A stretch of DNA of 64,000 nt from Anthoceros angustus (lineage: Eukaryota > Plantae > Anthocerotophyta), in NCBI GenBank assembly GCA_010909165.1, contig VJWM01000019.1, positions 1,426,001 to 1,490,000 on the forward strand. The letters run 5' to 3'. The translations under genes were made by a program, and so were the position numbers. Of the stretch, positions 1 to 56,900 are shown piece by piece. Below the pieces are notes generated by a model, which was not told the origin of the DNA, ran no database searches, and saw only the letters and a list, made by a program, of their open reading frames with translations. Position 1 is the first letter of the stretch. Each line of letters starts with the position of its first letter.

Positions 1-130
1 GTTCCTTGATGGAATTCTCTCTCCAAGGGAGCTAACACGTGTCATGTAAGGCCAGTGTTAGAAAGCAGTTGTGGAAGGGTGATAGGGATTCAGTGTTGCA
101 AAGCGGTGGCAGGCAATTTCTCGAGGCCCG

Positions 131-458
131 ATGGCGAGTGCAAAGGAAGAGAAGGCGCTGGAGGAGAAGGACATCAAGGAAGGAGATTACGTGTGCACCA
201 GATTCCGTGGCGGTGAGGAGACGATGCACATGTCTTTTAAACCTCCTCCGAAGGTTGAGCACAAATTATTAGAATATGTCTGTTTGTGCAGGCACTCGCG
301 AGGGGACGGTTGAGCACATCGCCAGGACTCCAGAGGAGCATCCTCATCCCCCCAAGGTCATCTTCACAAACCAGAGGGGACGCCAGGTTGCGCACAACCC
401 CTCCACTCTGACCAAGAAAGGGACAGAAGAATTCCAGAAAGAATGTGGCGGTAAATGA
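131..458 (+). CDS. Small two-exon gene (131-212, 292-458; 82 aa), fungal-type Hva1/Tudor-like (DUF2945-like) protein
   Basis: Removing a 79-nt GT-AG intron (213-291) joins two ORFs in frame: MASAKEEKALEEKDIKEGDYVCTRFRGGTREGTVEHIARTPEEHPHPPKVIFTNQRGRQVAHNPSTLTKKGTEEFQKECGGK. The pattern I-x-EGD-x-V-x-TR-x-RGG-x2-EG-x-VE...PPKV-x-F-x2-Q-x-G-x2-VAHNP-x-TL is one I recall from small fungal proteins. Confidence 0.7.
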
Positions 459-1933
459 CAATCTCGGGTGCAGCATTATTCAGGCAGATGGCCATAAATA
501 TCACAAATTATACAGTGTACAGTGCTGCAATCTTGTCGCTTGTCGTGTCACGGACACCAGATACATGTGCAGCAGGTTGGAGACGGTCTTTTGTCCGTTA
601 GGTGTAACTTGCCAATAAGATTTTACAGATGTGTAGAGATGTTGAATGTTGCTCAGCGACTAGATTCAGCAGCCATGCGTGCAAATAAAGGTGTGTTGAA
701 TCTGAGTCTGGCAATTAGAAGCAAGCAAGCTCGGAAGCACAGGTATTAGGACTGGTTTATTGACCGCAGCATTGATCAATTCGACCTAGATGCTGACAGG
801 CATACAGAATATAAGCTTCCTTGGAATTTGTGTCATGGAACTAGCTGAATCGACCACGGGCAGGGAGTGGCGTGAGGCTTCCAGCGTGAGCGGATCACTG
901 CTTCCCCAGAATGGTCCCTTGTGGATTTGATTGGTTTGTGGTTCAAGTAATATGCTAAGCGCTACTTTGAAGCTAATGAAAGAATGGGGTGAGATGGGCT
1001 GCAAGATTGGAGTCTTGGCCAATTGGTTTGGTGTAAAGTAACACCCATATGTGAGGCTTAGGTCTACGCAGTGTCCTCCTCCAAGAGCGGAAGAAATCAT
1101 AAGGGTAGATGCCCCTAGTAAAGGGGCTACTTGAGAACCTCCCCTCCCCCTCATCACACCATTTCATGGACAACATGGTTGGTGCCAAATCATGGCACAT
1201 CCCCAGTACATCGCCCTCACCGGTTCCAAAGTGCCACGAGAAGGCATAGTTGTGAACCATGCCATATCTTTGTGACATTGGAAATGGTACCACTCTAGTC
1301 TCCTCCAATTTGGTACACCATACAAAACAAACAAGTAACAAAATTGATAAAATTCAAGATTTCCTTTGGGGAAAAGTAGCGAACACATGAATAAACAAGT
1401 AATGCATTCCAAGTTCACTTTCCTCCGACGCGAGAGGTTCAACCAGGACGCGGGGTGATCTTCAACGGTGTGCCGTCTTTAAGGAGCGGAATTTTGTGTA
1501 GAGATGCGATCGGCTGTGGCTGCAGGTCTGGACATGTTGGCCGGCATTTTGTGCTGTGAGACGTGGTCATTATCACATCAATGGGGTAGCCATAGTAAGG
1601 AAAGTAGGGTTGGATAGCAATCGTGACGTGGGCTCGAGAGATGGGCTCCATGCACTTCTTTTGCGGGGTCCCCAGCTGTGATAGTCAGCTGCGGAAGGAG
1701 GCAGGTTTCAGCTCTCGTCGGTCTGGCTATCTCGCTGCAGCTGCGTTTCGGGTCAATTCTTGTTCCTCGAAAACGACACTGTTCCTAGGTTCTTCAAAAG
1801 TGCAGGATTTCTCCACGGATGAGCTGCCTCACAAGGTGCTCCTGCAGGCCTCTGTGGCCAAGGTACAAACCTTTCTCTGTGTTTCAGGTCGTCGTCGATG
1901 TTGTTACGATTTGTGTGGAGGGGCTGACGGTAG

Positions 1934-3586
1934 TTGGCCATGCTGCTGTTTGACATGCAGACACTGGCAGGACAAGTTGAAGGGGGATCCCTGGAACAGC
2001 GGGGGGGCAGAGCTGTGGAAGCATGTTCTGTTGGAGAGGAGGATAGCAGCGACGGTGTTCAGGTCGTTCCTGTGGTCGTGACGCCCAAAAGGAGGCTAAG
2101 AAAGTTGTTCAGGCAGAACAATGAGCTGTTGGGGTTTCCTCCTGAAATCCTCAGTGCCAATATTGCTTTTCTGGAGTCCATTGGAGTTCAGGAGAAACAC
2201 ATATTGTCCCTCATGGGAAAATGTCCTGCAGTGCTTGTTGTGAACTTGGAGGAAGTGCTGATGCCATTGGTAGAGCGTGTTCAGCAGCTTGGTGTGGACA
2301 AGAAGTTTATTGGTGGCTTGTTGAAGTATAACCCCAGCCGAGTGCTGCGTATTGCTGATTCAAATGTCAGTGCCAATGTAGAGTTTCTCAGCGGTTTAGG
2401 GATTGCTGCTGGTCAGATTGCCAGAGTTGTGCGCGGCAATCCACAGGTGCTGGTCATGGATGTTGTATCAGATTTCCAGCCATCTGTTGACTTCCTTTAC
2501 GGGCTGGGCTTGGATATAGTGAGTGTCCGCAAGGTCATCATTGTCTTCCCGACTGTTCTGGGCCTGCGTGTGGAGCAGAATCTGAAGCCTAAGGTAGAGT
2601 ACTTGAAGACCATCGGCGTGGCTCCGTCAAATATTGGGAAAGTGATTGTAAGATGCCCCCCGGTTCTTGGTTTCAGCCTGGACAACCTTTTGTCCAAAGT
2701 GGAGTACTTGCAGGGGATCGGAATCTCTTCAAGAACCTTGAAGCTGATGGTGGAGCGATGTCCTGCAATCTTGGGCTACAGCATAGAAAAGAATATGCAG
2801 CCTAAGATCAGGTATCTGGAGAGCATTGGAGTTGAGCAAAAAAACATAAGCAAGATCCTTGGTGTCTCGCCGAATCTGCTTGGCTACAGTGTGAAGAAGA
2901 ATCTGCAACCAAAAATCGAGTATTTGAAGAGCCTTGGAGTGGACCAGAGTGGCCTCAACAAAATCATCACAACGTCGCCAGTGATTTTGAGCTACAGCTT
3001 GGACCAAAGACTGAAGCCAACAGTGAAATTCCTGTCAGACATGGGTTTCAGCAATGACAGGCTGGTCAAGTTAATCATCTCAAGTCCCTCAGTCTTCTCT
3101 GTTTCTATCGAGGGAAAATTCTGTGCCACACTGCAGTTCTTCTCAAAGCTGGGCATGGATGCACGATCAAGTGGCATGGTGAGGGCATTCACATCATGCT
3201 TCTCAAATTCCATTGTGACTCTGGAATCAAGACTTCGGTGCCTTTCAAGCTATGGGTTCTCAGACTCTGACGTTAATGAGATGGTGAATGCCCAGCCTGC
3301 TCTCCTCACTCTGAGTGATGAAAACTTGAGACGCAAGATAGAGTTCCTGAAAGAGAGTACGGACTTTTTCGAGCTCAAGAGATGGAAACTTGCCAGATTT
3401 CTGACTTACAGCCTGGAATGTAGAATGAGGCCTCGACATGAGCTGATGTCTTGCATGAAGTCAAGGGGCGTCCTGAAACAGGACTTTCAGTTCACAACCA
3501 TGTTGGAGCTGTCTGAAAAGCAGTATCAAGACAGATTCGTTATGTGCCAGCTTGCAGACGCAGCCTTAGCCAAAGACCCGGGGTGA
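1934..3586 (+). CDS. mTERF-family (mitochondrial/plastid transcription termination factor) protein
   Basis: 550-aa uninterrupted ORF with many mTERF repeats (P.VL..S.E.NL.PKVEYL.S.G) and a typical C-terminus (LTYSLECRMRPRH). First ATG is at 1940; an upstream transit-peptide exon from ATG 1641 is possible but unresolved. Confidence 0.9.
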   Translation: MAMLLFDMQTLAGQVEGGSLEQRGGRAVEACSVGEEDSSDGVQVVPVVVTPKRRLRKLFRQNNELLGFPPEILSANIAFLESIGVQEKHILSLMGKCPAVLVVNLEEVLMPLVERVQQLGVDKKFIGGLLKYNPSRVLRIADSNVSANVEFLSGLGIAAGQIARVVRGNPQVLVMDVVSDFQPSVDFLYGLGLDIVSVRKVIIVFPTVLGLRVEQNLKPKVEYLKTIGVAPSNIGKVIVRCPPVLGFSLDNLLSKVEYLQGIGISSRTLKLMVERCPAILGYSIEKNMQPKIRYLESIGVEQKNISKILGVSPNLLGYSVKKNLQPKIEYLKSLGVDQSGLNKIITTSPVILSYSLDQRLKPTVKFLSDMGFSNDRLVKLIISSPSVFSVSIEGKFCATLQFFSKLGMDARSSGMVRAFTSCFSNSIVTLESRLRCLSSYGFSDSDVNEMVNAQPALLTLSDENLRRKIEFLKESTDFFELKRWKLARFLTYSLECRMRPRHELMSCMKSRGVLKQDFQFTTMLELSEKQYQDRFVMCQLADAALAKDPG

Positions 3587-3863: not shown

Positions 3864-6579
3864 TCAAGCGTCTTCTTGATTATCAATGCTGTGAAGTTGA
3901 TCCATCTGGGTTTCTTGAGGCATCGCTCTAAGATTTACACTCTCCGGATCCACCATGTCCGTGTAATACATCTGCTCCTGATCCATGACATCTTGCGGGG
4001 ACCCCTCGCTCTCCAGGGCTTGAAGGTCTGCTGCCTGCTGCTGCTGCTGGAGATGGGACCGGTCCTTGGCAGAAGTGGCGAGCTTGAGAGCTTCCATCTT
4101 CTGCTGAGCTCCGGGGAAGGCCTCACAGATGCAGGCAGCAGGGTACTCGTGGAAGCCTGCCTTGCCGGGCCTCACTTCCATGGGCTCTCCCATGAAGCCC
4201 TGCTGAGCGGACTGCAGCTTCTTGGCGAAGACCTCCCAGCTCATGGCGTGCCTGTCCATAAAGAGCTGCCCCAGCTTCCTGGCGTTGGGCCGGATGGTCC
4301 TCTTGTGCCCGAAGAAACGGCGTCTGCCGGCCAGCACCTGGGCCATGTTACCGTTGTTGTTGGTGACAAACACGTCGCTCCTGTCGCACACTATGTAGTC
4401 GATGGCTGCAAGCTGCGACGTGTGGTCCCCGAACGCCTGCAGCTCCTGCTTGCTGGCCAGCGTGTCCTTGGTCTCCAGGTTGGGGAACATGGCCTTGAGC
4501 GGCGCCAGCGTCCTCTCTCCCCCGTACACCTCCCCCGACGCAACGTACAGGTGGGACTCGCTGTCGAACCCCAGAGCCTTGAGCATGAGCCCGACTTCCA
4601 GAGGTGAGAGCGGACACTTGCCGTTCCGCCTCTGCTGTTCCGGATTCTTCACCTGTAACAGCATCAGCAGCAGCAGTAGGAATCAGGCCGCAAAGCACAT
4701 CTCCTTCCAGGTCAGGGTTTCATCATCTGCAGCAGGAGGAAGAAGGAGACACATGACATGCCATCAGATCATCTGCTTCTGGTTCACGAGATTCTTCACC
4801 AGCAGGAGGAGGAGGAATGAGATGAAAAGGCAAGCACCAGATCTTCTTCAAGATTAGATCTGGTTTTATAGGACACTCACATGCAGGTTCTCCCACCGCT
4901 TCCGAATCTCTCCAAGTTCTTGCACCTCGGCATCACCTCCTCCGTAATAGCAGCCTGAGAATGCCAGCATGTCCGGTTCAAACCTGTGAACATCTGAACT
5001 GTTCAATGCTAGGGCAGGAGCAAGGAAGGGAGCAGCAGAGCAAAGCACAGCATGCCAACGCTGCTTACCTGAGATGGAGAGCCATGTAGGTGCCCCCCTT
5101 CTGCTTCATCCTGTCCACCAGGGCTTGGCCCAGGGTGGAGATGGACCCGGTAAACTGCAGCGCCTTGTAATTCACTCGGCATCGCAGCTTCTGCAAGTCG
5201 GTGTCCAAGCTGTTGGCCAGCCGGAAGTCGAATTTTGTCAACCTGATTACCTGGAGGCAGGCACGGGTTCAACCTGAGGTCAGCATGGGTGCTGCTGCCG
5301 CTGCTGTACAGATGTTACCAAAGCCTGTGTCTGACTCTGACAAGGTAACGTCCCCCGACTGCACCCCCCAGCTGGCAGGCATTATGTGTAGAAAAGCTTA
5401 CTCGTCGTTCTCGTAGTACTGGCAGCACCGTGTCCAAGTAGAAAGAAGGCTTGCTCCTTCTGGGAACCCGCATGGAAAAAGCTGGCACATCTGCAGGCGC
5501 GCGGTTCACGACCCGCACCTCCTGGGCCACATTTCTGACGAACCAATCCTCATCAAAGAGGTCTCCAAAATTGCTGCAAATTCCGAGCAAGCCCGAGATG
5601 AGAAGCCAGTCACCGGCACCAGCACCAGAGCTCCCTGAATGCAGCAGGAAAGGAAATGCAAGCCCTACCTACCTGTCATCCTTCCAGAACGAGTCGTGAT
5701 CCAACTGAGGGATGACCAAGGTTGCATTCAGGATGCGGGCGACAACCACAGCGTCGGTGATCTGCAGAAAGCATAATAAACATCAGAACTGAGCTCAGCC
5801 AGTGAAGGAAGCCTCCAAAGAGCTCTGCACAAATTGGCATGGAAAGAAATCAACCAATCCCATACCCCGATCCGCTGCTGATTCAGCCCGCCACTGGTCT
5901 CGATTATAAGAAAGCCATTGGAATCCGAGGTGGGATCCACCGCTGCCACAAATCCAAACACAATGGTGTTGGAATTACTCCGCTCCGCAATCCTACCACA
6001 AATGCAATGTTGACTCAGGCGCAGCTGGGAAGGTAGTGATCCTCACGGGAATAATGACTGGAGGGATCGCTACAAGCATGGTAGAATCTGGAGTACTGCG
6101 ACCGCCATACCCGCTCCTTCAACACCGCACCTCTCTCCACCTGCTGTGATCACATTTCACAAGCTCCCCGGCCCTCAGCTGAGGAGAAGACCAGGCAAAT
6201 CAGCAGAGTCTGGCAGCCAAATCCTGCTCCTCCTACGTACCGGCAAGCGATGCAGGCCCTTCACCCGCACCTCCGGGTGCTCGGAATCCGTCTGCCAAGC
6301 CACCAGGGAACAAGCCGGTCAGACATTGCCTGCGGGAGAACACAAGAGCAGGGCGGGTGCAGCGTTGTGGGCTGTGCGCGTACGCACCAGCAGGAAGTTG
6401 GAGGACTGGGTCCGTTGCGGCCATAGCGGGCTGGCCCCGCGGGTGAAGCTGTCTCTGTCGGGGAGATGGCCGGCCAGGGAGAAGACGAAGGCGATGACCA
6501 GCAGAGCCGAGGTGATGTAGAACAGGGCGGTCAAGGTTGTGGGAGCGGGTAGGCGTTTGGGGCGTGGGCGGGCCATCAT
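3864..6579 (-). CDS. O-fucosyltransferase family protein (plant GT106-like), multi-exon, N-terminal transmembrane anchor
   Basis: Exons encode NGFLIIETSGGLNQQRIG, FGDLFDEDWF, FEPDMLAFSGCYYGGG, KCPLSPLEVGLMLKALGF, LAAIDYIVCDRSDVFVTNNNGNMA and GFMGEP...FHEYPAACIC. A TM segment (LFYITSALLVIAFVFSL) follows the ATG at 6579. Confidence 0.92.
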
Positions 6580-8491: not shown

Positions 8492-11400
8492 ATGGATGTC
8501 TGGAGCGTTGCTGCTGAGTCACGCAAATGGCATCAGGACCCGTTGTGGGGGCAGTTTTCGTGGACCCAACAAATCGGGAGAGTGCTAACAGATGTTCGAG
8601 GAAGAACTCCCGCGCACCTGACGTCCAGGAACCAACCGTTGCCACACAAGCAAGCCTCCAGGTGGAGCACCTCTGCAAGACAGCCAGCCCGTGCAAGGGG
8701 ATTTGTGGCTGGAGACGGAGCTTCCTCCAAGGGTAGTGCTCAGGAGCCCTTGCTGGTGTCCATACTTGGGTTGGATAATGGGGAAGAGATGGGTCGTCGT
8801 GCTTGGAAAGCAAGCTGGAGCTTGTCGGATGATGCTGACCCTCTCGGGACTGCAGCATATGAAAGGGGCGTGACCGATGAAACCGTGAGTAAGCTGTGTC
8901 ATGAGGGCCATGTTACTGAGGCTGTTGAGGCTCTAGGAGTCCTTGTGCAGACACGTCGTCGTATTTCGAAATCTCTCTTGTATGCTGTGCTGAAGCAATG
9001 TGTTGACAAGAAGGAGCTTGTTCTTGGTCGCCGGGTCCATGCTTTCACGGTGATAAAGGGGTTCCAAGCGGACACGTTCGTGTGCAATCACGTCCTTCGG
9101 ATGTATGCTTCTCATGGCAGGTTGCAAGAAGCGATGGATGTGTTCACCGTGGTTGATGAGCCAGATACTTTCATGTGGGCTTCCATAATTTCTGCGCATG
9201 CTAAACATGGACAGAGCAAGCAGGCCATACAACTCTATCATCGGATGCGCACGTCAAGTGTGAAACCAGATGGCCATGTGTTTGTGGCAGCCCTTCAGGC
9301 TTGTGCAAGGGCGTCAGACTTGAAAACTGGGCAGCAGGTGCATGCTGATGTGCTGGACCGCGCAGTTGAGCCTCACTTATTTGTCAGCAATTGCCTGGTG
9401 GACATGTATGTAAAGTGTGGCAGTTTGGAGGACGCTCAGAACGTGTTTGATGGACTTGGTCAGAAGGATGTGGTGACTTGGACTGCTCTGATTGCAGGGT
9501 ATTCCAAGAGGGGCATGGGCCAAGAAGCCCTTCGTCTCTACAGTGCTATGCAAGAGGAAGGCATTGCTGTACCCAATGCCATGACCTTTGTGTGCCTATT
9601 GCAGTCATGTGCGAGTGTGGGCAACCAAGCGTTGCAGAAGGGGAAGCAGCTTCATGTGCAGATTACAGAAGGAGGACTCGAATGTGATGTTTTTATAGCC
9701 ACTAGCTTGGTGAACATGTATGCAAAGTGCGGCAGCTTGGAAGACGCTCAAAAAGTTTTTAATGGACTTGATCACAAAGATGTAGTGACATGGACTGCCA
9801 TGATAGCAGGGTATTCCCAGCAGGGAATGGGCCAGGAAGCCCTTCGTATTTACAGTGATATGCAAGAAGAAGGCTTTGCTGTACCGAATTCCGTAACATT
9901 TGTGTGCCTCCTGCAGGCATGTGCAAGTGTAGGAACCCTGGCACTGGAGAAAGGAAAGCAGCTTCATGCGCAAATTAGAAAAGGAGGGCACCAAGACGAT
10001 GTGTTTGTAGCCAACAGTTTAGTTAATATGTATGCAAAGTGTGGCAGTTTAGAAGATGCTCAGACAGTGTTTGATGGACTTGGTCAGAAAGATGTAGTCA
10101 CATGGAATGCTATGATATCAGGATATTCCCAGCAGGGCAGGGGCCAGGAAGCCCTTCACATTTACAGTGCTATGGAAGAGGAAGGCATTACTGTACCTGA
10201 TTCCGTGACATTTGTGTGCCTCTTGCAGGCATGTGCAAGTGTGGGTCCCCCCGCGTTGGAGAAGGGGAGGAAGCTTCATTTGCAGGTTAGAGAACGAATC
10301 GATCAAGCTGATGTCTTTGTAGCCAGCAGTTTGGTGAACATGTATGCAAAGTGTGGCAGCTTGCAAGATGCTCAACGAGTGTTTGATGGAATTGGTGAAA
10401 AAAATGTTGTGGCATGGACTGCCATGATAGCAGGATATTCCCAGCAGGCATGGGGCAGGAAGCCCTTAATGTCTACAGTGGTATGCAAGAAAGCGGTATA
10501 GCTGTCCCTAATTCTGTGACATTTGTATGCCTCCTGCAGGCGTGTGCTAGTGTGGGTAGCGCGGCGTTGGAGAAGGGGAAACAGTTTCATTCCCGAATCA
10601 GAGAAGAAGGACATCAAGCGGATGTGTTTGTAGCCAACAGTTTGGTAAACATGTATGCAAAGTGTGGCAGCTTGAAGATGCCCGCAGAGAGCGTTTGATG
10701 GACTTGTTAAGAAGGATGTGGTGACGTGGAATGCCATGATAGCAGGATATTCCCAGCAGGGCATGGGCCAAGAAGCCCTTCGTCTGTACAGTTCTATGCA
10801 AGAAGAAGGCATGGCTGTACCTGATGCTGTGACATTGGTGTGTCTCCTTCAAGCATGTGCAAGTGTGGGTCCCCCCGAGTTGGAGAAGGGGAGGAAGCTT
10901 CATTTGCAGGTTAGAGAACGAATCGATCAAGCTGATGTCTTTGTAGCCAGCAGTTTGGTGAACATGTATGCAAAGTGTGGCAGCTTGCAAGATGCTCAAC
11001 GAGTGTTTGATGGAATTGGTGAAAAAAATGTTGTGGCATGGACTGCCATGATAGCAGGGTACGCTCAGCAGGGCATGGGGCAGGAAGCCCTTAATGTCTA
11101 CAGTGGTATGCAAGAAAGCGGTATAGCTGTCCCTAATTCTGTGACATTTGTATGCCTCCTGCAGGCGTGTGCTAGTGTGGGTAGCGCGGCGTTGGAGAAG
11201 GGGAAACAGTTTCATTCCCGAATCAGAGAAGAAGGACATCAAGCGGATGTGTTTGTAGCCAACAGTTTGGTAAACATGTATGCAAAGTGTGGCAGCTTGG
11301 AAGATGCCCGCAGAGCGTTTGATGGACTTGTTAAGAAGGATGTGGTGACGTGGAATGCCATGATAGCAGGATATTCCCAGCAGGGCATGGGCCAAGAAGC

Positions 11401-12853
11401 CCTTCGTCTGTACAGTTCTATGCAAGAAGAAGGCATGGCTGTACCTGATGCTGTGACATTGGTGTGTCTCCTTCAAGCATGTGCAAGTGTTGGCAACCCT
11501 GCGTTGGAGAAGGGGAAGCAGCTTCATGCACAAATTAGGGAACGAGGACATCAAGCTGATGCCATGGTAGCCAACAGCTTAGTGAATATGTTTGCAAAAT
11601 GTGGCAGCCTGGAACAGGCTCAGCTTGTGTTTGACGGACTTAGTCAGAAAGATGTGGCTACCTGGAATGCTATGATATCAGGATATTCCCAGCAGGGCAA
11701 GGGCCAGGACGCCCTTCGTATTTACAGTGCTATGCTAGAAGAAGGCATCGCTATACCTGATTCAGTGACATATGTGTTCCTCCTGCAGGCATGTGCAAGT
11801 GTGGGTAAATCAGCGTTGGAGGAGGGAAAGGAGCTTCATAAACAGATTAGAGAAGGAGGACATCAAGCTGATGTGTTCGTAGCCAGTAGTTTGGTAAACA
11901 TGTATGCGAAGTGTGGCAGTTTGGAAGACGCTCAGAGAGTGTTTGACGGACTTGGTGAGAAAAATGTGGTGACATGGACTGCCATGATAGCAGGGTACTC
12001 CCAACAGGGCATGGGGCAGGAAGCCCTTCGTCTTTACAGTGCTATGCAAGAAGAAGGTCTTGCTGTACCCGATTCTGTGACATTTGTATGCCTCCTGCAG
12101 GCATGTGCAGATGTGGCAGCTTTGCATCTGGGCAGGGAGCTACATGTAAAGATTCGAGAACAAGGGCTTGAAGGCAATTTGTTTGTAGCCAACAGTTTGA
12201 TAAACATGTATGGAAAGTCTGGAAGCATGGCTGATGCACAGAAGGTGTTTGATGTGTTGCATAGAAGAGATGTGGTCACCTGGAGTGCGATGATTGCAGC
12301 CTACACGTATCAAGGGAACACAGAAATGGTCTTTGACCTGTTCGAGAGAATGAGGGAGGCTGGCATACAGCCAGTCGGCATCACATTTCTTAGCGTACTA
12401 ACAGCATGCAGTCATGCTGGTCTAGTGAACGAGGGGAGAGAGTACTTCGACGCCATGAGCAGAGAGTACGGAATCACTCCCACGGTGGAGCACTACACGT
12501 GCTTGGTGGATATCTTGGGCCGTGCTGGCCAACTGGATGAGGCACTTGCTTTGGCAAGGTCAATGCCTGTACTTTCTAATGCTGCAGTTTGGCACACCCT
12601 GCTGGGTGCTTGTCAGAAGTGGAGCAACGTGGAGGTAGGAAGGCACGCTTTCGATCAAGCAGTGACGTTGGACAGCAAAGATAGCGCAGCATACATGTTG
12701 ATGTCCAATATATACACGGGTGCTGAGATGTGGGAACAGGCAGAGGAGATGCAAGCGTGCAGAAAGGGAATGAGTGCATGGAAACAGCCAGGTCAGACCT
12801 GGTGGTCAGACTTGGACGGGCTTGTGCATAGTTTCTTGGTTGAAGCAGGCTGA
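8492..12853 (+). CDS. PLS-class PPR RNA-editing factor with E1/E2/E+ domains and truncated DYW; interrupted by three indels in this sequence (sequencing error or pseudogene)
   Basis: About 11 P-L-S triplets (VVTWTAMIAGY / SVTFVCLLQAC / SLVNMYAKCGSLEDA), then P2-L2-S2, E1, E2 and KQPGQTWWSD...HSFLV. ORFs 8492-10501 and 10718-12853 are in the same frame and are bridged by a shifted frame (10414-10698). Confidence 0.88.
10229..11490 (+). repeat. Near-identical 624-bp tandem duplication (two PLS triplets) inside the PPR gene
   Basis: Sequence from 10229 recurs at 10853, and the offset of 624 still holds at 10866/11490. Only a few substitutions and three indels differ. Confidence 0.95.
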
Positions 12854-13217: not shown

Positions 13218-15994
13218 CTAATATTTCCTATACCCTGACCAAGAATTATAATTTCCATCCCCTCGCCCGGGTCCAAGTGCTATCCGATCATCTTCCAGCA
13301 CCTTCAAATCAGGTGCAAGAAGCCGAGTGTACCGGTCGAAATACAGAAGCTGCTTCAACAGAAGCCCAAATTCACGAGGAAATTTCAAACCGTATGCATC
13401 ACTGACACGAACCTGTAACAGCAGGGAAGATGTGATTATCCTGGTAATGCAACTTCTCAAAAAGACAACGACACTTCGAGTAAGGTTCAGGTTTCCAGTC
13501 TCAAGGAGGCTTACCACGTCGAGAAGCAAAGCATTAATTTCCTGCTCATCCACAGCTAAAGTAGCAGCCACTGTGGTTCGAGAAGCCCTGCTGCTGCTGG
13601 TAGTAATCACCACGTCTGTGTCCAAGTCCTGTGAAGGTGACGGGTTATGAGATGATCCAGTCAAGGGGACTGCAATACTACTCTGAATTCTTCCAGATTA
13701 GAAATAGCTTGAACACGATCTCGCAACATACAGTTAAGTTACCTGGACTGCTGAGAATATCTTCTCTAGATCTCTGGCAAAGCTTTCCAAATCCACTTCC
13801 TTGTCAGTGGCACCCATTTGATTCAAGGCAGCTGCCATGGCCTTGTATTGCCCACTTCCTAAGGAGGTCAAAAAAATCTCCATTGCTGCCCACGTTGCTG
13901 GTGAAATGCGCCCAACAATGCCTGCTCAGGACAATGTCGTTTTAAAGTCATTGACAAACGTACAGAATCTGAGCACTATGGATGTCGGTGACAAGGACAG
14001 GACATGGAGACAAAAATCTTTACCAAAATCGATAAACCCCACCCGGCCATCTCTCAGCACCAGCAGATTTCCAGCATGTACATCTGCATGAAAGCTCTCC
14101 GAAGCTACCAAGCTTCCAAACCTGCAATTGCCAGATCCAAGAGAGTGATGAATACAGCTTGTGGGATGATGGAAACTCTCTCAAGGAAGTTGTAAAATGC
14201 GTACCAAACATTCAGAGCCGATATTAATGTTGCCTCGGGATTGGGAACAATCGCCCGAATGGCATTCAGATCTGTCAAGGGAACTCCATATAAACGCTCC
14301 ATTGTCAATATCCGCTGCGAACTGCAATGAGGATATACTGTCGGGGCCTTGGCTTGGTTGGTTAAACCACTGGTCTCCAAGTATGTTCTAAACGACTGGA
14401 TGTTGATAGCTTCTTTTCTAAAATCAACTTCCTCCAACATGGATGTCCGGATGTCTCCAATTATTCCAACCTATCCACCATCAGATTCTCAATGTCATAA
14501 GACGCCAGTGCCCAAAAAGAAAGAACGATAATCTGCGCTCAGCTAAGGCAACAAGACGTCCATAACCAGTAAACGACACGCATGAAACTACATACCAATG
14601 ACGTGCGACTGAGTTGAGGATTCAGAAATTCCAGCACACGTGCAGTGATGTACAGGAAATTCAGGTCTGCTGTTAGGATGTCCTCCACTCCAGGCTTGAG
14701 CACCTTGATAACGACATCCGACCCAGTCCCCCTGAGCCGTGCTGCATGAACCTGTAAATGTGTAAGATCTTGGGCAATGGGGATGTATCTCACAGCAGCA
14801 GAAATACAACAGCGAAAATGGTGAAGTCAGTGGACCTGAGCAACAGAAGCAGAAGCAATCGGTTGGGGATCCACATACTCGTAGACTTCTTCCAAGGGCC
14901 TACCAAGCTCTTGACGTATGATGGCTTTGATATCACTGAAGGGAACAGGTGGTGTTTTGTCGAGACAGCTCTGGAATTCTTTCACGTATTCTGCTGGGAA
15001 GAGAGTTGGTGCCGAGGCTATGAACTTCCATACAAACAGGTTATAAGCCCCAGAGACCTATCACCATCTCACAAACATCATAATAGCAACTGAATCACCC
15101 TTATCCTGGCAGTTGCAGATTCTGACCTGACCCAACTTGATGTAAGTTGCTCCCAGCCGCTCGAAAAGCTTCCGTAGCTGTGCGGGACCTGGTGGGATAA
15201 ATGCAAGACCGGCAACATTGCCAGTAGCAGCTCCAGAATTCTGCACACCAGCGCAGCATTAGCTGCCATGGACAATCCTCAGACATGAGGAATGACACAG
15301 TTTCATAGCTTTGTGAAGAAGAAATGAGTACTTGTAACTGCTGGGACTGCTCCAGAAACCATTCAGCTCCGACGGTGACAACAGCTTCAATCCCTTGAAC
15401 GAGCCTGACAGCACCCCTAGGACCCGTGCTCACGGTGGTGCGTACTACTTCTTCCACCAACTCGTTGAATTTCTTGAGCCTCTCTGTGATACCATGCCAG
15501 AATTAAGTTGCCTCAATTTCCCACATTCACAACATGAACCAATGTGATCTCTCAGTGCTTCCGACCACACATGGCAAATCAGATCTTAGAAAAGACCTTG
15601 TCCCTGCTTCCTGTCGAACGTTGTGGACGAGGAAGATGAGGTTGATGCTGCTGATGATGATCGAGCCCACACCGCCCAGCTATTCTGCCTGCTCCAAGTC
15701 GCATTCTTCAGCGTCTGCGCTGCCCACTCCAACGTGTTGCGACGCAACCAAAATCCTTCCTGCTACAGCGCCGAACGCGTTAGGGAGATGTACGGATCTC
15801 CCACAGCGGGCAAGACCTCATCAGCCCACCATTTCCCAAATTCAAGTACATAGTCAACAAGCCGACTGAAATCTCGGGTTCGCCTCCCTCCATCATCCAC
15901 ACCAACATCACAAACAACAGTCAGGAATATCTTCAGGCCACCAAACCTGGGGAATGAAAGACGAAGGGAAACGGGCGCAAGCTGTCAGCGCCAT
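13218..15994 (-). CDS. ABC1K9: ABC1/UbiB-like atypical kinase, At5g05200/ABC1K9-like, multi-exon
   Basis: Exons encode LRKLFERLGATYIKLGQ, VHAARL...VVIKVLKPG, EEVDFRKEA, ESFHADVHAGNLLVLRDGRVGFIDFG and FPREFGLLLKQLLYFDRYTRLLAP. The 5' end (ATG 15994) is tentative. Confidence 0.85.
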
Positions 15995-47900: not shown

Positions 47901-50900
47901 ACAGCAATTCAGTCCAAAGATAAATTCAAAAAACCACCAGGAGCATCTCTGCATAACAGGAACAAGCATCTTACCTGAACCATGCTCACGATGATATCCA
48001 AACCATCGCATTCTCGCATGACCCCTGTAATTGCAAACTCAACCTCCGGATCTTGAGACTCTTCTCTGTCATCTTCAAGCTCTTTGATCATTGGCTCAGT
48101 TGCCTCTCCATCAAGACCCTGCTTATAGCTCAATCTCAATAATGATGCAATTTCAAAGGAAATCACAAGACGGTGACAGACAGGTGGCCTTTCCTCATGT
48201 CAACTACTGACCTGCAATCTGTATGTAACTGTCATTGGAGGACACTCACGACCAGCCTGACCTCCAGCTGCTGCCAGAAGACTTGCACCAATAGTTGAAC
48301 TTGCGGCCTGACTGTGTGCTTTTCTCCAGACCTGCTCATATACCTGGGCTACGCTAAGATCTAAAGCAATAATGTTTCCAGCCACAAGGAGCTCCATCCC
48401 ATAGTCGTCTTCCAGAAGTCCCAGAAGCTCCAGTGATTGACAGATCTTGTTCTTTACATCACGCATAAGTGGCCCAACTTCGAGACTGTTGTAGGGATTC
48501 TTTGTCATAGACCCTCGGATGAACTCCTCCTGTGTGCTGGACTTATTTAGGACCATCATATATGCAGGCTCTGGCTTGGATGGACATATGATGTTGCACA
48601 GCTGCTCCAAAATGAACTACCACAACAAAAACACGTGTGTCATGCACAGATACATCATCACGAAACAAGTCCATGCCACTAACGTGGCATAAGCTGCTTA
48701 CCAGAGGAGTACGATCCTTTCTGTCTTGGCAATGTATCTGAAGACCAGCGATGCAAGCTCGTATGAAGTGGCGCTTATTTTCATAACTTTCCTGCAGAAG
48801 ACTGTCAAGTAGTTCACGGAGGAGCCTACCACAATCACCTGTGAGCTTTGTCTTTTGCACAATCAATCCTCTAATAGCCAGGAGCGCTTCTAAAACTTGT
48901 GCCAATAGCTCTTCTTTCATGAACCTGTCACAAATTCAACTAGATGTCACCCACCAGTCCTCCAAGAGTTTCTGTGCACGTATGCTAACTGGAAGCAGCG
49001 GAACACCTCTGCACAGGTAAAGCACTGGCGTTTCCATTCAATCAAAATCATCCAACAGAAAGACATACCTCGCCCGAATATTAGGAACTTGCAGAAACTT
49101 ATTTAACAATTCAATTAGCTTGTGCAGAATATAGCCCTGCGAAATGTCAGTGTGAAAACTGTGCTCCTGAGCTTGTATGTGTTTTACTTCGTCGGCTATT
49201 AGACCACAAGCTGTCTTCAAAAAGCCTCTCACTGTGAGATATAGCCGAGCTTCTTCTATCTCAACCATCTTGAATAGAAGCTCAAAATAATCGGCTGCAC
49301 TCTCGCCCGCGGCACGTGTGGCAGGCAGGAGAGTCATAAGGAGATTGAGGAATCTGGACCGTCGGGACGAGCTTTGTGAGCATAGCACCTCTATCAACCC
49401 ACACATCTCTGCTCTAATTGCTTGTGAGCATGCACTCAACACGAGTCCATTCACCCACGAACTTTCCTCAAAGGCTGCCAACTCGTCAGTGACAGGCACC
49501 TTGCAAGCCTTTCTCTTCCACCTGAGCACACATTTTAGGGCTAAGTAATCTACCCGGTTGAGGTCCTTTTTAACCCCTGCTGCAGTTGGTTTCAGGTTCG
49601 GTGAAACAGTGTACTCCCTCCTCACAAAATCTGAAAAGGAGGTTCCATTTTTCCACTCTGCATAGTTGATGAGAGGTAACTCGGGGGCCTTCAATTCTTG
49701 TTCACCATCCTTCTGACATGAGCCAGGAGCAGGCTTTGGCAGCATGTTAGTCTGCATCACAGATACACTCCTCACAGGCTCATCAGAGGATGGCTCAGGT
49801 CGTGATGACGGTGGAGCAACACCTGGCTCGGTTTCCGGCTTCGGAGGAGTACATAGTTGGGACACAATCTTTAAGCAAGGGAGAATAATGTGCTCAGCAA
49901 TAACAGGGTGACGGGCTCCTAGCTCGATCGACCGAAACAACAGCTGAAAGACTACTCGCAAACGAGCCTCCCAAAAGTCATCATTCAAAGAGCAAGTCTC
50001 AGACAGCAACTGCAGCTCATCCCTGACACAAGATGCAATATCCATGGATCGATGATGCTCGAGGCAGTAGATAGCCTTCTGCTGTATCAAACTGTTCAGC
50101 TCAGCAACAGCTGATCCATCACCTTCTGTAAAAGCGCAAAGCACGGCTCTAGCTTGAATCCTTGCTGTCCTAGGACCTTGATGGATATTGTTCTCAAACA
50201 GTTCCCGCAAGATACCTCCTGCAACCAATTGTTGCCGACACTGCTGCTGCCTTGCTAAAACTTGCAACCATTCCAAGCAGTGCCCAACAAAAGTATTAGC
50301 ACAACCAAAGCATCTATTAGGAGGTCTCGGAGATACCACCACCCTCGGTGCAGAATGTCCCCTCAAGTTCTTCCGTTCAAGATAAGACATGAGGACTCGT
50401 CGAAGACCTTGCAGTGTCTGCACACTTTTGCTGACAGAGTCAAAAGCCATCTTACACTTCTCACCATACAGCACCCCTAGAATGGCTATCTTTCGGTTGG
50501 TCTTAAACGAAGGAGATCCAGGAAGGTTGACCATCATCTGCTGTACGGAATCCTTCTGCTGGGAATCCAAATCCGATTCTCCAATACTCGACACAAGTTT
50601 CATCAATGGCTTCTTGAAACCAAGAAGCTGCTGATACCTCCTGTGGGCATTTTCAGATTCTGCCTCAATAGCTGCTAGCCCCTTCTTCATATCGTCTTCA
50701 TTTTCCATGCTATCAAATGTAAAGCTTGGTTTAGCCATGAAATTGAACTCGAAACGGCCATATTTACTGTACCCACACTCGTTACATAGAAAAGAATCAA
50801 GGTTCTCATAGTTGATATTCCTGCATTGCCGACACTGATATGCATTCTCATGGCAGTTGCTGCAGATACCATGCTTATCTGTGACAAATCGACTACACCT

Positions 50901-53900
50901 TGGGCACTGAAGAGATTCAAGCGATGATGCCTGCAAGTTCTCATAGAAGGAATCCAACTCAATCATAAAGTTACAAGCCGTTATTGGAATAGAAAAGTCC
51001 ACCTTCAGCTCTGTTTGATTGACAGTCAATTGACAGCACCGAGCCCGCTTCCAAAGCGACCAATTATTCTTTAGCTCTGAAAGATCAGCAACAGGCCTGT
51101 TGTTGTAATACAGGTTAAGCACTTTAACGGACTTGGATCTTCGAGCATCATGCACGTTCATAGTCACACTCTGAATAGTATGACTCCCGACACATTTCAC
51201 AAGAATTCTGTTATCTGTGAACTTTGTTTCTGCCTTGAGACTGTCTAGTTTCATGCGGGTGTAAGGAACCTCGGGACTGCTGCAGGCTAGACAAGGTTCA
51301 CTCTCCAGATAATAACCATCAAATTCGACCAAACTGGCCAGAGTGTTGTAGATCCGGGAGTTTGGATGATTTGCAAGTAGCTCATTCTGTGCACACAACG
51401 TGCTATATATTCTTTTGACCACATCAGCATTCAAGCATCCTTGCACGGCAGCCATCTCCTGGCCATTGAGACCCCCTTCTGAACCCCCCTTGCCAAGAAG
51501 CCAAGTTAACAAATCAGTGTATTCGACAATGTTCTGACCATACGAAGGCAAAAGTGGAACCCTCTCCAGCAACAGCGTCAGTATCAGGATTCGAAAGGGC
51601 AGCCTGCCATGGTGCCAAGCACCATGCAGAACCGATTTTGCCTCGGAGCGTACTGACGTGGCATTCCACTCCAGCAGAAATTTATCAACAAACTGCCTTA
51701 GGATCTTACCATCCTCGGCAGCTAGCTGATCCACAGCTGCTTCCATATCTAAATAAACCTTTTCACTTGTACTCACTGAAGAGAGAGTTTCATCACTGCC
51801 ACCTTTCCTCTTCTTCCTTCCATTCACCATCTGTGCTGCTTTTGCTGAAGTTGCAGCAGCACCGGACGCAGAGGTTACTGGGTCAGGTATTTCTGCAGCT
51901 GCAACTCTTGCTGAAGTACCTCCAAGTTCTTTGCCAGTATAAAACACTAACATCAACAGCTTCAGAGTTTGGACAACCGATTCTTCCCCAAAGGAGAACA
52001 CCCCGTTTAGAAGAAACTGAAGGACATCGATATGACGGACGCAGTATTTCTGCCAATTCCGAGGCCTAGCCACAGCTACATCCACAATAACTGTCAGACA
52101 TTTCACCAGTTTGACGCTCCTTTCATACGACACTGGCACCTGAAATCCACCTGACTTCTGAGCCAGCTTGTTAAGCCTCTTAACCTCCCGGCTAAGCTGC
52201 CAGGCATCACGCACATTGTAATAATGCCCTTTCGTCCCGCACATATGCAACAATAGCTTCCTTGCATACTTTCTGATAAAGGTTGTGTGAGGATTGTTTA
52301 TGTAGCTACATAGTATTTCTTGCCATCCTTCCAACTTAAGCTCTGGACTAGAACAACTTCTGGAATTCTGGTCCTTATCACTGCCCTTCTCCAGTTTATC
52401 CGGTCGAACAAGACTGTATGTCAACCGGAAAGTATTCTCTAGGAGCAGGCGGTGAAACTCCCCAAAAAGATCCCCCCTGTGAGCTTTTGCATATGAATCC
52501 GAAAAATATGGAGTGAAGCTTCCAGAAGCAAACTCACGTCTGGCTGTCAACAGAGCCCCACATGCTGCACCCCCTGCGCTGGGCAGGCTCGATTCTGATG
52601 CTCTAGAAGAAATTTTGAAATTGTTACTCAGTTGTTGCACAATATTGAGCAGATACGACAAGAAGGGTTGCTGACGCAAGGCAGAGCATGCTTTATCCAA
52701 CTGAGATCCTCCTTCGTTAGCAGCTTGACCCTCACTGGGACATGGTGAACTTGATCCTGAGAAAGACACCGTCATGGCAGCCTCACTGCTTAAAGGGGCA
52801 GCTCGGCTCTGAGAGTGATCTGACCCAGGTTGGTGCCAGTTCCTTAGCACAAGTGTGAAGAACATAAAGACCAAGATGATCACCTCACCAAAATTTGTCC
52901 GCACCTTAACCGATAACGGAGCTGATAAATCCATCTCTTTCAGGAGCAACTTGATAAGCCTTTCCAGATTGAGACTTCCACTGTCCAGTGTTGGCTCCAC
53001 CAGTGGCCCTGAAGATGCTGATGCCAGGCGATAGAATAACTGCATAATAGGAACTGCCTGGGAACCTGAACTTGTCCTCATCCACCCGTGTATATCTTCG
53101 ACAAGGCGATGCAGGAGAAAAGAATTTACTGCACTTTTGGAGGCGGAAAACACAAACCCCTTTGAGCCATCCAACACTGTATGGACAAGCCCAGTGCTAT
53201 CACTGCCTTCAACTCCAGCCACAATAGGGGGGCTGCCAGCAGCCTGTAGGCTGAGTTCTGTTGCCATCTGCAACAAGCTCTCATCACTCAAATCATCAAT
53301 AGCTGAATATTGAAGATCACCAGGATCTCCTCCTGCTGCCTCCATCTCTATGGGGATTGCAGACATGGGATGATCCCTTGTATGAGGAGGAGGAAGTTGA
53401 TCTGCATCCATCACTTCATAGCAACCTTCACAAAGATCAAAATCGTCACAGACGTTACAATGCCATCGGCGTCTGAGTATTGGCACAGTTGAGCAGCCAT
53501 CACAGCAATACTGGACAGATGCAGTGCTTGGATCTTCTTCCACCATGACTTGGGCAGAGCCAATTGTCCCATGCCCACCTTCCAGAGGTGATGACGTTGC
53601 TCGAGAACTTTCTGCAACATCATCCATGGCCAGCATTGTTTGCTTTGGAAGGGGTACTTGCAGCAACCTTGACGAAATTGCCAGACTGCAGAACACAGAT
53701 CCAATCATAAATTTCAACTGTAGAGCATCAGGCATAAGAGAAAATCAATCAACCCGTGAATAATTGTACTAAGCACCATATCTATACCTGCATGATGTTC
53801 GAACTGCCTCATATGGAGAAAACAATAGTTTTCTCACCAAAACAACTGCAGGTGCGACTGCTACGTCAGCAGGAGCTGAGCGAGTTCCATGTGTAGAGAG

Positions 53901-56900
53901 ACACTCGGCATAACTATAGATGAGGTCAACCATAGGTATAACCAAGTTGTTAATGCTTTGAGCGTCAAGTTGCTCTCTAACAAGAATCTCCCAAAGAATT
54001 TTAACTAGTCCATCCACAACTGCGGAGCCTGCAACCAAGGAAAATCAGGTCAGAAGCGTTTTCATGTGGTAACAGGCCCAGCCACTTTCAGTTGAGAGGG
54101 CTCCACATCGCAAGCTCTAAGAACTGTTGACAACATAACACACTGGCATCCCAGACGCCTCCCCATCTATTATACATACTTACCATGCTGTTCTAGAAAG
54201 CTTGCCAGGTTTGATTGGCGATGAAGCGCAATCTTACAAACTGATCTCATTTGTGCAGAAAATTCCTGTACAACCCAAGATGTTGTAGACCCTCCAGCAG
54301 CTATATTTGATACAAGCAGTGGGCAAGAACGAGCAACTCCAGCCAAACGCATAGTGTCCTTTGCCTGCAGGGATGCAGAGCTATGCATTAGTATCACCAG
54401 CATCCAAAACCTCTGGAAAGTCAGACTCACTGGGATGTCTCACCTGATAGTATGTTTCTTTTGCAGGATAGAGAGCTCGAAGAACATGCCTAGCTGCAGA
54501 CTGCAAAAGCGGCTGTCTGTCAGTTTCAAAAATCACTTCCAAGACAGGCATGCACTTCTTCCTACTCAGTACAACCCTTGCTTCATCTGTCTCCAGTAGC
54601 AACAGCATTCTGTGTGCCAGATAATAGCCATACAACAATCTCAAGCTGTCAGAAAGAATGTTTTCTGGCAATGATCCACTGTGCAGCACTTTATGCTTGG
54701 CCTTTCCATTTCCAGCGCCAGATAATGAAGTAGCTGTTCCATGCCCTTGAGACTCCATGTCCAGGACAGCATCCAGTTTCTCTTTCCATCCAAATTCATC
54801 TTTGGACCGTCCATAGATCTCGAGATTATCAACCCGTGGCAAAGAAGACCCATTGAACGTTGGACCCACTGTAATTGTTATTTCCTCATCAGCTAAGAGA
54901 GCTTCAGAATTTGTAAATGGTATGTCGTACCAGCAGCGCACACCTTCCTCTAGCCGTATCGTTCGTTGGAAAACACGAACCTCTGAGGGAATATGGCTAG
55001 CTGAGGTGTTTCCAACATGAACTCTACAGCCAACCATCACTTGCTCTGGATTAACATTGAGCACCACAATCTGTTCACACACAGGGCATAGCATCGTCAG
55101 ACAGGATACACGTCACAAACAAGAGAACCACAGCCATCAGGAAGGCAATTCCAAAATTGATGTAGAGAGACTATCTTCTGCAGAACCAAAAAGAGAAAAC
55201 AGAACTAACATCCGAAACCTTCTGTGACGTTGTTAGAGATTTACCCTGAACCCACTGGCATTTGGACCTTCCAAGAAGCCATCTTCTGATGAGAGACTCA
55301 TCTTTATACTTTCAGAATCGGTATTCCTTAGCATATCACCACCAAATTTCACCTCTGATGTGATGCATGTGGTCTTCTCAAAAAAGTCCAAAGGAAAGAC
55401 TGGTGCAGTTCCATTGCTGGCCCGGTTTCCAAGTAGCATAGCACCTAGTTTCTTCACCTGCTCTGCTTCCAGGCTGGAACTATGCCTTTGTGAATCCATG
55501 TTCAAGGAACTGTTGACTGCATCCAAATGGGAGGCCAGGTATGCATACACTTGCAGGCTGCCATCATCATGCAGTGTCAAGATTGTGTGTCTGTCCTTTG
55601 ACAAGGGCCTGTATGATGCCACACCATCCATCCGCATAGAGGTAGCATTACCAGCTGCTCGAAGATACTGGCAATGAACCTCAGCATTTCCTATGTGAAC
55701 TGCAACAGCTGAGTTTGATCTCGCACTAGAGAGACACACAAAAAGGCCACTCCCCTCAAACATCTCTCTCCAATGATGCAGCCCTGCAGGTTTTCTCTTT
55801 CCGTCTGATTCAGCCTCAAAAATGCTGGAAACCTGAAGAATTCCTGTTGCATCTTGATTCATACGGGCAATTAAGGACGTACCATCACTGTATGAGAGGA
55901 GAAGGACTTTTCTACAGGCATAGTAGCAGATAGACACACCCTTCATAGGTCTGTACATGTCTGGCAGCTGTATGTTCTCTGTCAAGATGCGTGAACCTGA
56001 ATCAGCCCCAACACCAACATGCTGGCTGTACAGGACCCCTTGATGTGAGAGTACCAAAGCTACCAGGCGGCCCTGCCCAACTGGTATAACAGTTGCATCA
56101 GCAATTGAGTCCTCAATGACAGTAAAATAATGCGAGGGACTGATTTTATCTTGTGACAAGTCATAGATTTTAACAAACTTGTTGGTTACCACCAGCAACT
56201 GAACTTGTGATCCAGGAACCCAAGCAACACGGCGAATGTGGGCATCCTGCAATGCAAGCTCAAGAGCCAGTCGGTCTGTGACCTCACCACGAGGATGTAC
56301 AGTGAAGATCTGGCAATCCTCAAAACCTGCAACTGCTAAATAACTCTCATTGGCACTGTTGAAGGCCAGATGCACAATTTCAAATCGAACTGAATTCCTC
56401 GAGAGGGGCTTCACTGTAGTCTTATCCACTGTCACTGGAATTGCGGTAGGCTGGCCTATAAGCTGCCCGACGTCAAATATCGTAACCTTATCCCCCTCTC
56501 CAGCAGCAAGTCTGCCTCGACTGCTCACACTGAGAAGAGACTTGACAATAGAACCACTGACAAGATGAGATTTCAGCTCCCTTGCATTTGAGTACTCTGC
56601 TTTTATTTTCATATCCAGCGATCCACTCTTGTAAGCCCTCTTCAGGTGTAGATCAGCGGCAGAAAGAAGGATCTTGGCATCCCCTAGGACTATTTCCTCA
56701 TCCTTTCCTGCTGCCACCTTCAGTCCCAGATTCAAGTCAGTTGACAATCTTTGACATAACGATATGACACGGGCCTCCACATCTACATCTGCAAACAGAG
56801 CCAACAATTTCCTCTCATCTCCTTCCGATATGGAAATTCTGAGACTAGAATCGCCTTCTGGCTGGTCCTCCTCATCTGCATCTGAGTCGCTATCAGATTG

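Follow-up and report, generated by a model that had tools for sequence, protein, structure and literature searches.

A spliced Hva1_TUDOR gene in the hornwort Anthoceros angustus, probably acquired from a Coccomyxa-like green alga

Gene transfers into bryophytes have been documented from bacteria, fungi and viruses. For the hornwort Anthoceros angustus, 19 genes in 14 families have been published as transfers from bacteria or fungi (PMC7027989), and transfers from bacteria and fungi into a bryophyte have also been published for Physcomitrium (PMC3493653). Here we describe a small two-exon gene at positions 131-458 of a 64,000-nt stretch of the A. angustus genome (contig VJWM01000019.1, positions 1,426,001 to 1,490,000 of the forward strand; the whole stretch is henceforth called the window), the product of which is assigned to the Hva1_TUDOR family. 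It resembles the published bryophyte transfers in being a foreign-looking, expressed gene of a bryophyte nuclear genome that is shared by related species. It differs from them in that the donor was apparently a chlorophyte and that the intron seems to have come with the gene. From the evidence presented below, we consider it probable that the hornwort lineage received this gene, with its intron, from a Coccomyxa-like alga.

The founding member of the family (PF11160) is Hva1 of Cryptococcus neoformans (CNAG_02591, PDB 4p5n). Knock-out and metabolomics experiments indicated that its deletion raises virulence and alters the pools of tricarboxylic acid (TCA) cycle intermediates and amino acids, and a metabolic, NADPH-linked role was reported; from its structure a ligand or partner site was suggested and likened to the NADP site of R67 DHFR and to the peptide site of Tudor domains, the binding itself being a proposal (PMC5008624). 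The window protein is of the same family as Cryptococcus Hva1 and is predicted to share its fold, judged on the model of an algal homologue, and the pattern PPKV.F..Q....VAHNP.TLT is conserved between exon 2 and the fungal protein. The latter differs, however, by an extra segment before NPPKV and by another N-terminus, and its gene has three exons (PMC5008624) whereas the window gene has two. In the glomeromycotan Paraglomus occultum (9958_t, P0047) the N-terminal sequence LEEKDIQPGDYVGTNFRGGTRQGYVERIATT resembles that of the algae and the hornwort, but the protein deviates by an insertion of 7 residues in front of PPKV and by an acidic tail of some length, and its gene has introns after MSKETR and before VAHNP and none at RG|G. 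The green algae Coccomyxa subellipsoidea C-169 (COCSUDRAFT_61953, P0026, 82 aa) and Coccomyxa sp. Obi (orthologue P0025) encode proteins of the same length as the window protein, and their genes share with it the two exons, the 82-nt first exon, the phase-1 intron in RG|G and the lack of an insertion before HPPKV. The gene contexts differ, with the order ABC1 - DnaJ/CSL - Hva1 in the algae and Hva1 - mTERF - O-fucosyltransferase - PPR in the window. Moreover, the intron and untranslated region (UTR) sequences cannot be aligned, and the C-terminal tail is acidic in both algae and reads ...EFQKECGGK in the window protein.

The gene and the neighbour needed to interpret its transcripts are laid out as follows:

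71..130, + strand: 5′ UTR (minimum extent), with RNA-like contigs starting at 71 (run X2) and 87 (run X18)
131..212, + strand: coding part of exon 1, 27 codons plus the first base of a split Gly codon, encoding MASAKEEKALEEKDIKEGDYVCTRFRG
213..291, + strand: intron, 79 nt, GT..AG, phase 1, within the second Gly codon of RGG
292..458, + strand: coding part of exon 2, encoding TREGTVEHIARTPEEHPHPPKVIFTNQRGRQVAHNPSTLTKKGTEEFQKECGGK, with the stop codon TGA at 456-458 and the core of the assigned Hva1_TUDOR domain
459..705, + strand: 3′ UTR, the X2 contig ending at 705 and the orthologous X18 contig at 758; AATAAA at 684-689
1418..3586, + strand: mTERF gene (PF02536, 3e-82), with RNA-like contigs from 1418/1425 and an intron at 1861-1958

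The locus is confirmed as a real, spliced and transcribed two-exon nuclear gene. Translation of the window letters gives an 82-aa product from pieces of 27 and 54 aa. The ATG is at 131, the donor G|GTGAGG at 212|213 and the acceptor TGTGCAG|GC at 291|292, and the split codon G|GC yields the second Gly of the conserved RGG motif. In run X2 (organism A, the same sample as the best DNA holder), a 558-nt RNA-like contig joins 71-211 to 291-705 and skips 79 nt with GT..AG ends; a 635-nt contig of run X18 (organism C), which is ~92% identical, has the identical joint. Both runs behave as RNA, because they also skip the mTERF intron and leave the spacer 721-1417 uncovered by RNA-like contigs. The AATAAA signal fits a 3′ end at about 705. 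The GC content of the intron is 0.42 versus 0.54-0.56 in the exons, and at third codon positions (GC3) the gene has 0.71, a value above the 0.49-0.57 of neighbouring host open reading frames (ORFs); that of the C-169 gene is 0.70. In the comparison of the window with organism B (run X3), eight of the coding differences listed are synonymous and one is a replacement (K to E at 417), and the differences listed are denser in the intron and UTRs than in the coding part. This is only an indication that the host gene is under purifying selection. In the DNA run X1, the assembly of the interval 322-400 falls apart around the C-run 347-353 in exon 2 and leaves several contigs of 31-57 nt, each with 0-2 gaps; the RNA-like contig has no gap at this place, and homopolymer or allelic length noise is probably the cause.

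The Hva1 gene is integrated beside host genes. A DNA contig of run X1 spans 377-2433 and bridges the Hva1 gene to the mTERF gene, and in organism B a single 4048-nt DNA contig is collinear over 1-1846 at ~90% identity. Contigs of public runs document the gene in organisms A, B and C. The region 1-1650 is not repeated elsewhere in the window, nor does the window contain an Hva1 paralogue.

For the family assignment, searches were made exon by exon. Exon 2 alone scores 28.7 bits against PF11160 (gathering score 24.1) and covers profile positions 14-59 of 59, and exon 1 aligns to the remaining N-terminal part of the domain in a 39-row alignment (A2). All 17 nearly invariant columns of that alignment are kept in the two exon pieces, including the family residues GD.V, RGG, EG.V, PPKV and V.HNP.TL. 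Against Cryptococcus Hva1 (4p5n), exon 2 gives a phmmer E value of 3.9e-6 (query 3-41, chain 29-72). The window protein thus adds a member to a known family. For its closest full-length homologue, the C-169 protein P0026 with 77% identity, an AlphaFold2 model has a pLDDT (predicted local distance difference test) score of 86, and its top PDB match is 4p5n_A (root-mean-square deviation 1.2 Å, 52% identity), with weaker matches to R67 DHFR and the Tudor domains of PHF19 and PHF1. By proxy, the product is predicted to be a small five-stranded Tudor/SH3-like beta-barrel with an N-terminal helix. A feature search of the ESM Atlas with exon 2 returned only sub-threshold aspartate-decarboxylase clusters, and a literature search on PF11160/DUF2945 found no plant paper. 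The preliminary description of this DNA had proposed a spliced 82-aa ORF with a GT-AG intron, integrated in a plant genome about 1.5 kb from an mTERF gene and belonging to the Hva1_TUDOR/DUF2945 group. Each of these points was borne out, including the junction across 213-291, which is skipped exactly in the RNA-like contigs of two species; only the distance needs correction, since the mTERF transcript starts at ~1418, about 1 kb past the Hva1 stop.

The relatives of the gene were sought in annotated or gene-called proteins, where a whole-library search with exon 2 gave 17 matches and a profile word search gave 84. Both lists are headed by trebouxiophyte green algae, namely Coccomyxa sp. Obi, C. 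subellipsoidea C-169, Botryococcus braunii, Nannochloris and Myrmecia bisecta. The fungal matches comprise many Dikarya, ranked much lower, as well as Paraglomus occultum, and in the profile word search fungi make up most of the named family members. No named land plant or streptophyte alga is among the matches of either search. A word search with exon 2 alone found one metagenome protein only, and a metagenome scan gave a single match on a C-169-like contig (L022) that is 93.5% identical to C-169 over 12 kb. The unnamed best matches are eukaryotic contigs. The window gene and that of C-169 agree in exon 2 at 86% of amino acid and 81% of nucleotide positions, and in exon 1 at 63% and 75%, respectively. 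Over the same 42 exon-2 residues Botryococcus is 71% identical to C-169, and Dikarya proteins are ~38-50% identical to the algal type. The nucleotide divergence of the window gene from every alga found is 19-25%. As far as these comparisons go, all close relatives are trebouxiophytes, the nearest of them being members of the Coccomyxa clade.

The algal genes lie in several distinct contexts. The order ABC1 - DnaJ/Zn_ribbon_CSL - Hva1 is common to the contigs L001 and L006, C-169 (L011) and Obi (L013), and L003 is collinear at the nucleotide level with L022 at the Hva1 locus. At least three further trebouxiophyte contexts carry the gene: the Nannochloris type, which L007-L010 share, Myrmecia, and a group with citrate synthase and DUF455. 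Being widespread in Trebouxiophyceae, the family is not alien to the green lineage as a whole. In the third group (P0028, P0032 and P0021; L016-L021), which comprises metagenome contigs and one NCBI assembly and is probably another trebouxiophyte lineage, the Hva1 genes sit between citrate synthase and DUF455. A divergent, GC-rich member (L023, 171-642) has GSG in place of RGG and keeps the phase-1 intron position.

Intron and indel characters point in the same direction as the identities. The phase-1 intron in RG|G is found in the window gene, C-169, Obi, L001, L003, L006 and the divergent L023, and a first coding exon of 82 nt was recorded in the window gene, C-169, Obi, L001, L003 and L006. 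This intron is absent from Nannochloris, Myrmecia, Paraglomus and the intronless L007-type and P0028/P0032 genes; in the Botryococcus-like P0087, a single-ORF call runs unbroken through RGGTREG. Nannochloris has introns before VAHNP and near the C-terminus. In alignment A2, Dikarya proteins show a segment of 7-14 residues before (N/H)PPKV and the N-terminal motif K.K.GE.I.EGD, both of which are missing from the window gene. The window gene likewise lacks the 3-4-residue insertion of Nannochloris-type algae and has none before HPPKV or K.VAHNP. Its flanks, intron and UTRs show no similarity to algal loci. The Coccomyxa synteny was not found in the window, where no DnaJ/CSL match occurs and mTERF, O-fucosyltransferase and PPR genes lie downstream; the upstream side falls off the window.

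As a control for the divergence of host and algae we used a host gene whose algal counterpart neighbours Hva1 in Coccomyxa:

13275..15490, - strand: ABC1/UbiB-kinase gene of the host, with collinear tblastx matches and ~60% amino acid identity to algal ABC1

The proportions of synonymous (pS) and replacement (pN) differences, together with the estimated synonymous divergence (dS), were as follows:

Hva1, window versus C-169: pS 0.47 (dS ~0.75), pN 0.14
Hva1, among Coccomyxa-clade algae: pS 0.58-0.94, pN 0.06-0.24
ABC1, window versus C-169: pS 0.78, pN 0.28
ABC1, window versus three algae (C-169, Obi, L001): pS 0.75-0.83, pN 0.28-0.30
ABC1, among the algae: pS 0.59-0.63, pN 0.08-0.11, with pS 0.59 and pN 0.08 between two Coccomyxa

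Identical codons are used at 37 of 52 conserved residues of the Hva1 pair window/C-169, when 27.5 are expected from permutation within amino acids (P 0.0004); between two Coccomyxa species the count is 36 of 62 (25.3 expected). In the ABC1 pair window/C-169, codon identity is at chance (58 of 165, 57.7 expected). With its ~50 synonymous sites, Hva1 is thus unsaturated at these sites relative to C-169, whereas the control ABC1 is saturated. The distance between host and Coccomyxa is that of an old orthologue for ABC1 and no more than that between Coccomyxa-clade algae for Hva1. The ratio dN/dS is 0.20 for the Hva1 pair window/C-169 versus 0.03-0.07 among the algae. The window and Coccomyxa each have an ABC1 gene of apparently the same subfamily (~60% identity over 12 collinear matches) in the vicinity of Hva1, at a distance of 13 kb and 3-6 kb, respectively, and with differing order and orientation. 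A co-transfer of ABC1 with Hva1 was rejected because the divergence of ABC1 from the algae is that of an old orthologue; as causes of the proximity we consider chance, to which we give a few per cent, old linkage, or an integration guided by homology that left this trace.

A 64-row protein tree places exon 2 with C-169 (91/91), the long-branched L023 product (P0015) being part of the same group, and exon 1 among the Coccomyxa rows; the Dikarya form a separate starred clade (95/90). A DNA tree of exon 2 separates L001 and L006 from the window, C-169, Obi and L003 at 95/94. The trees are unrooted and the protein trees are short; they are compatible with a nesting of the window gene in Coccomyxa, short of proof.

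Taken together, these data make it most likely that an aeroterrestrial green alga of the Coccomyxa clade (Trebouxiophyceae) supplied the gene to the hornwort lineage in the form of genomic DNA that contained the intron. A direction from alga to plant would be the more economical one, because the synteny is conserved in the Coccomyxa clade and the family is spread across Trebouxiophyceae, while the plant side is represented only by close relatives of the window. The occurrence of the gene in organisms A, B and C would place the transfer before the split of the sampled host species. Nor would the transfer be recent, because intron and UTR sequences defy alignment with their algal counterparts and dS is ~0.75. 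For the fuller claim, that a nuclear intron-containing gene of a chlorophyte from the Coccomyxa clade reached a land plant, here a hornwort, and became fixed, spliced and subject to purifying selection, we see the odds as slightly better than even.

Several observations weigh against a transfer from Coccomyxa. The absence from land plants and streptophyte algae refers to annotated proteins, among which small genes are easily missed and hornwort proteomes seemingly are not represented. In the 39-row protein tree exon 2 sits at the base, on the branch between the algal and fungal halves, and in the exon-2 DNA tree the window is part of a polytomy with C-169, Obi and L003. In approximately unbiased (AU) tests, monophyly of the algae to the exclusion of the window gave p 0.23 and that of the Coccomyxa rows p 0.28, so that neither was rejected. 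Furthermore, the gene gives only 69 comparable codons, and a permutation P of 0.01 was also obtained for the presumably vertical ABC1 pair window-L001, so that the P values are somewhat optimistic. Finally, the proximity of ABC1 in both lineages could hint at an old linkage.

The alternative that survives best is that an old Viridiplantae gene was inherited vertically, kept only in hornworts and trebouxiophyte algae, and lost elsewhere. Trees with all algae together and the window outside cannot be rejected, kinases of apparently one ABC1 subfamily are found close to Hva1 in the window as well as in Coccomyxa, and hornworts are known to retain alga-like traits that other land plants have lost (PMC7027989; PMC11439496). 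The contrast between the divergences of Hva1 and ABC1, however, argues against descent from a common green ancestor: synonymous sites of Hva1 are not saturated, those of the control are, and the replacement divergence of the control is three times that between Coccomyxa species. In addition, the intron is common to the Coccomyxa clade only and absent in other trebouxiophytes, in exon 2 the distance to C-169 is smaller for the window than for Botryococcus, and no named streptophyte member is among the matches. We therefore regard vertical inheritance as unlikely.

The preliminary description had proposed a fungus-to-bryophyte transfer for a family that it did not know from seed plants. The absence of the family from named land plants and streptophyte algae agrees with our searches, and a foreign origin is indeed the best reading, but the proposed donor does not stand. 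A mycorrhizal or otherwise associated fungus as the source would suit a family whose named members are mostly fungal, the published fungus-to-hornwort transfers (PMC7027989) and the N-terminus of Paraglomus, LEEKDIQPGDYVGTNFRGG, which resembles exon 1. On the other hand, the nearest relatives are Coccomyxa-clade algae, with which exon-2 identity, intron position and phase are shared, and no fungal match comes near the 79-86% identity seen with Coccomyxa. The Dikarya are distant in the tree and set apart by their insertion and N-terminal motif, and Paraglomus has an insertion and its introns at other sites. A fungal donor is thus very unlikely.

Paraglomus (L012, 3001-3568) and Nannochloris (L014, 3001-3408) both have an intron directly before the VAHNP codons. 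Together with the algal-type N-terminus of Paraglomus, this may be a trace of an earlier exchange of genes between trebouxiophyte algae and fungi that diverged early.

A transfer in the reverse direction, from a hornwort-like plant into the Coccomyxa lineage, would agree with unrooted trees, which carry no direction. It would have to be reconciled, however, with the conserved ABC1 - DnaJ/CSL - Hva1 synteny in C-169, Obi, L001 and L006, with the nucleotide-level collinearity of L003 and L022 with the C-169 locus, with relatives in at least three further trebouxiophyte contexts, and with the lack of the gene in any other named land plant among the matches. We consider it highly improbable. Algal contamination or a chimeric assembly join, for which one could invoke that Coccomyxa-like algae are common on bryophyte material and such samples, is scarcely credible and was rejected, because short-read assemblies made independently for two species connect the gene with mTERF and PLS-class PPR genes lie in the same window, and because the gene differs from every alga found and has flanks unlike the algal loci.

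Further features of the window are:

3867-4664, - strand: ORF with a GDP-fucose protein O-fucosyltransferase (O-FucT) domain, just downstream of mTERF
8492-10498, + strand: first of two tandem single-exon PPR genes
10718-12850, + strand: second tandem single-exon PPR gene, with an E motif, PLS class, RNA-editing type
49041-53735, - strand: very long ORF with UBR4-like and ZZ domains
55233-61646, - strand: 2137-aa ORF adjoining the UBR4/ZZ ORF

The PLS-class PPR genes, one of them with an E motif, identify the window as land-plant DNA, together with mTERF, the UBR4/ZZ-domain (BIG-like) gene and the O-FucT gene. The ORF at 49041-53735 probably represents one exon of a giant E3 ligase gene of the BIG/UBR4 type. 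The best named relatives of the mTERF protein are ~30% identical and come from Diphasiastrum (a lycophyte), Riccia and Marchantia (liverworts) and dinoflagellates; judged from these matches, a close relative of the host would seem to be missing from the protein databases.

As regards function, the window product has no signal peptide-like start and no catalytic motif. Like Cryptococcus Hva1, for which such a role was proposed, it may act as a small barrel that binds a ligand or a protein, probably in the cytosol. Our best guess, made with low confidence, is a binding adaptor that affects redox or energy metabolism, and perhaps, with equally low confidence, one of use to organisms exposed to air and drying. 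The link to symbiosis or stress that had been suggested for the gene is speculation.

PF11160 is not mentioned in the accessible portions of the supplements to the A. angustus genome paper, and the hornwort and alga passages of a Plant Cell 2025 review contain no case of a transfer from a green alga to a land plant. A literature search for a gene transfer between Coccomyxa and hornworts found no paper. As no published case was found, the pair of a Coccomyxa donor and a hornwort recipient would be new. If true, a green-alga donor with a retained, still spliced intron would add a eukaryote-to-eukaryote route between co-habiting phototrophs to the sources of bryophyte genes. Should the trebouxiophyte family itself be fungal in origin, for which the similarity of Paraglomus and the shared intron before VAHNP might speak, boundaries at the level of kingdoms would have been crossed twice, among organisms that share damp soil and rock as a habitat. 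The locus would make a small and clean test case, as it involves a single gene, a donor clade that is known and more than one host species. It also illustrates that "fungal-type" Pfam labels can mislead the inference of donors, because the family is native to Trebouxiophyceae as well. Finally, a transformable plant with a single copy of the gene would be a convenient system in which to find the biochemical function of the family.

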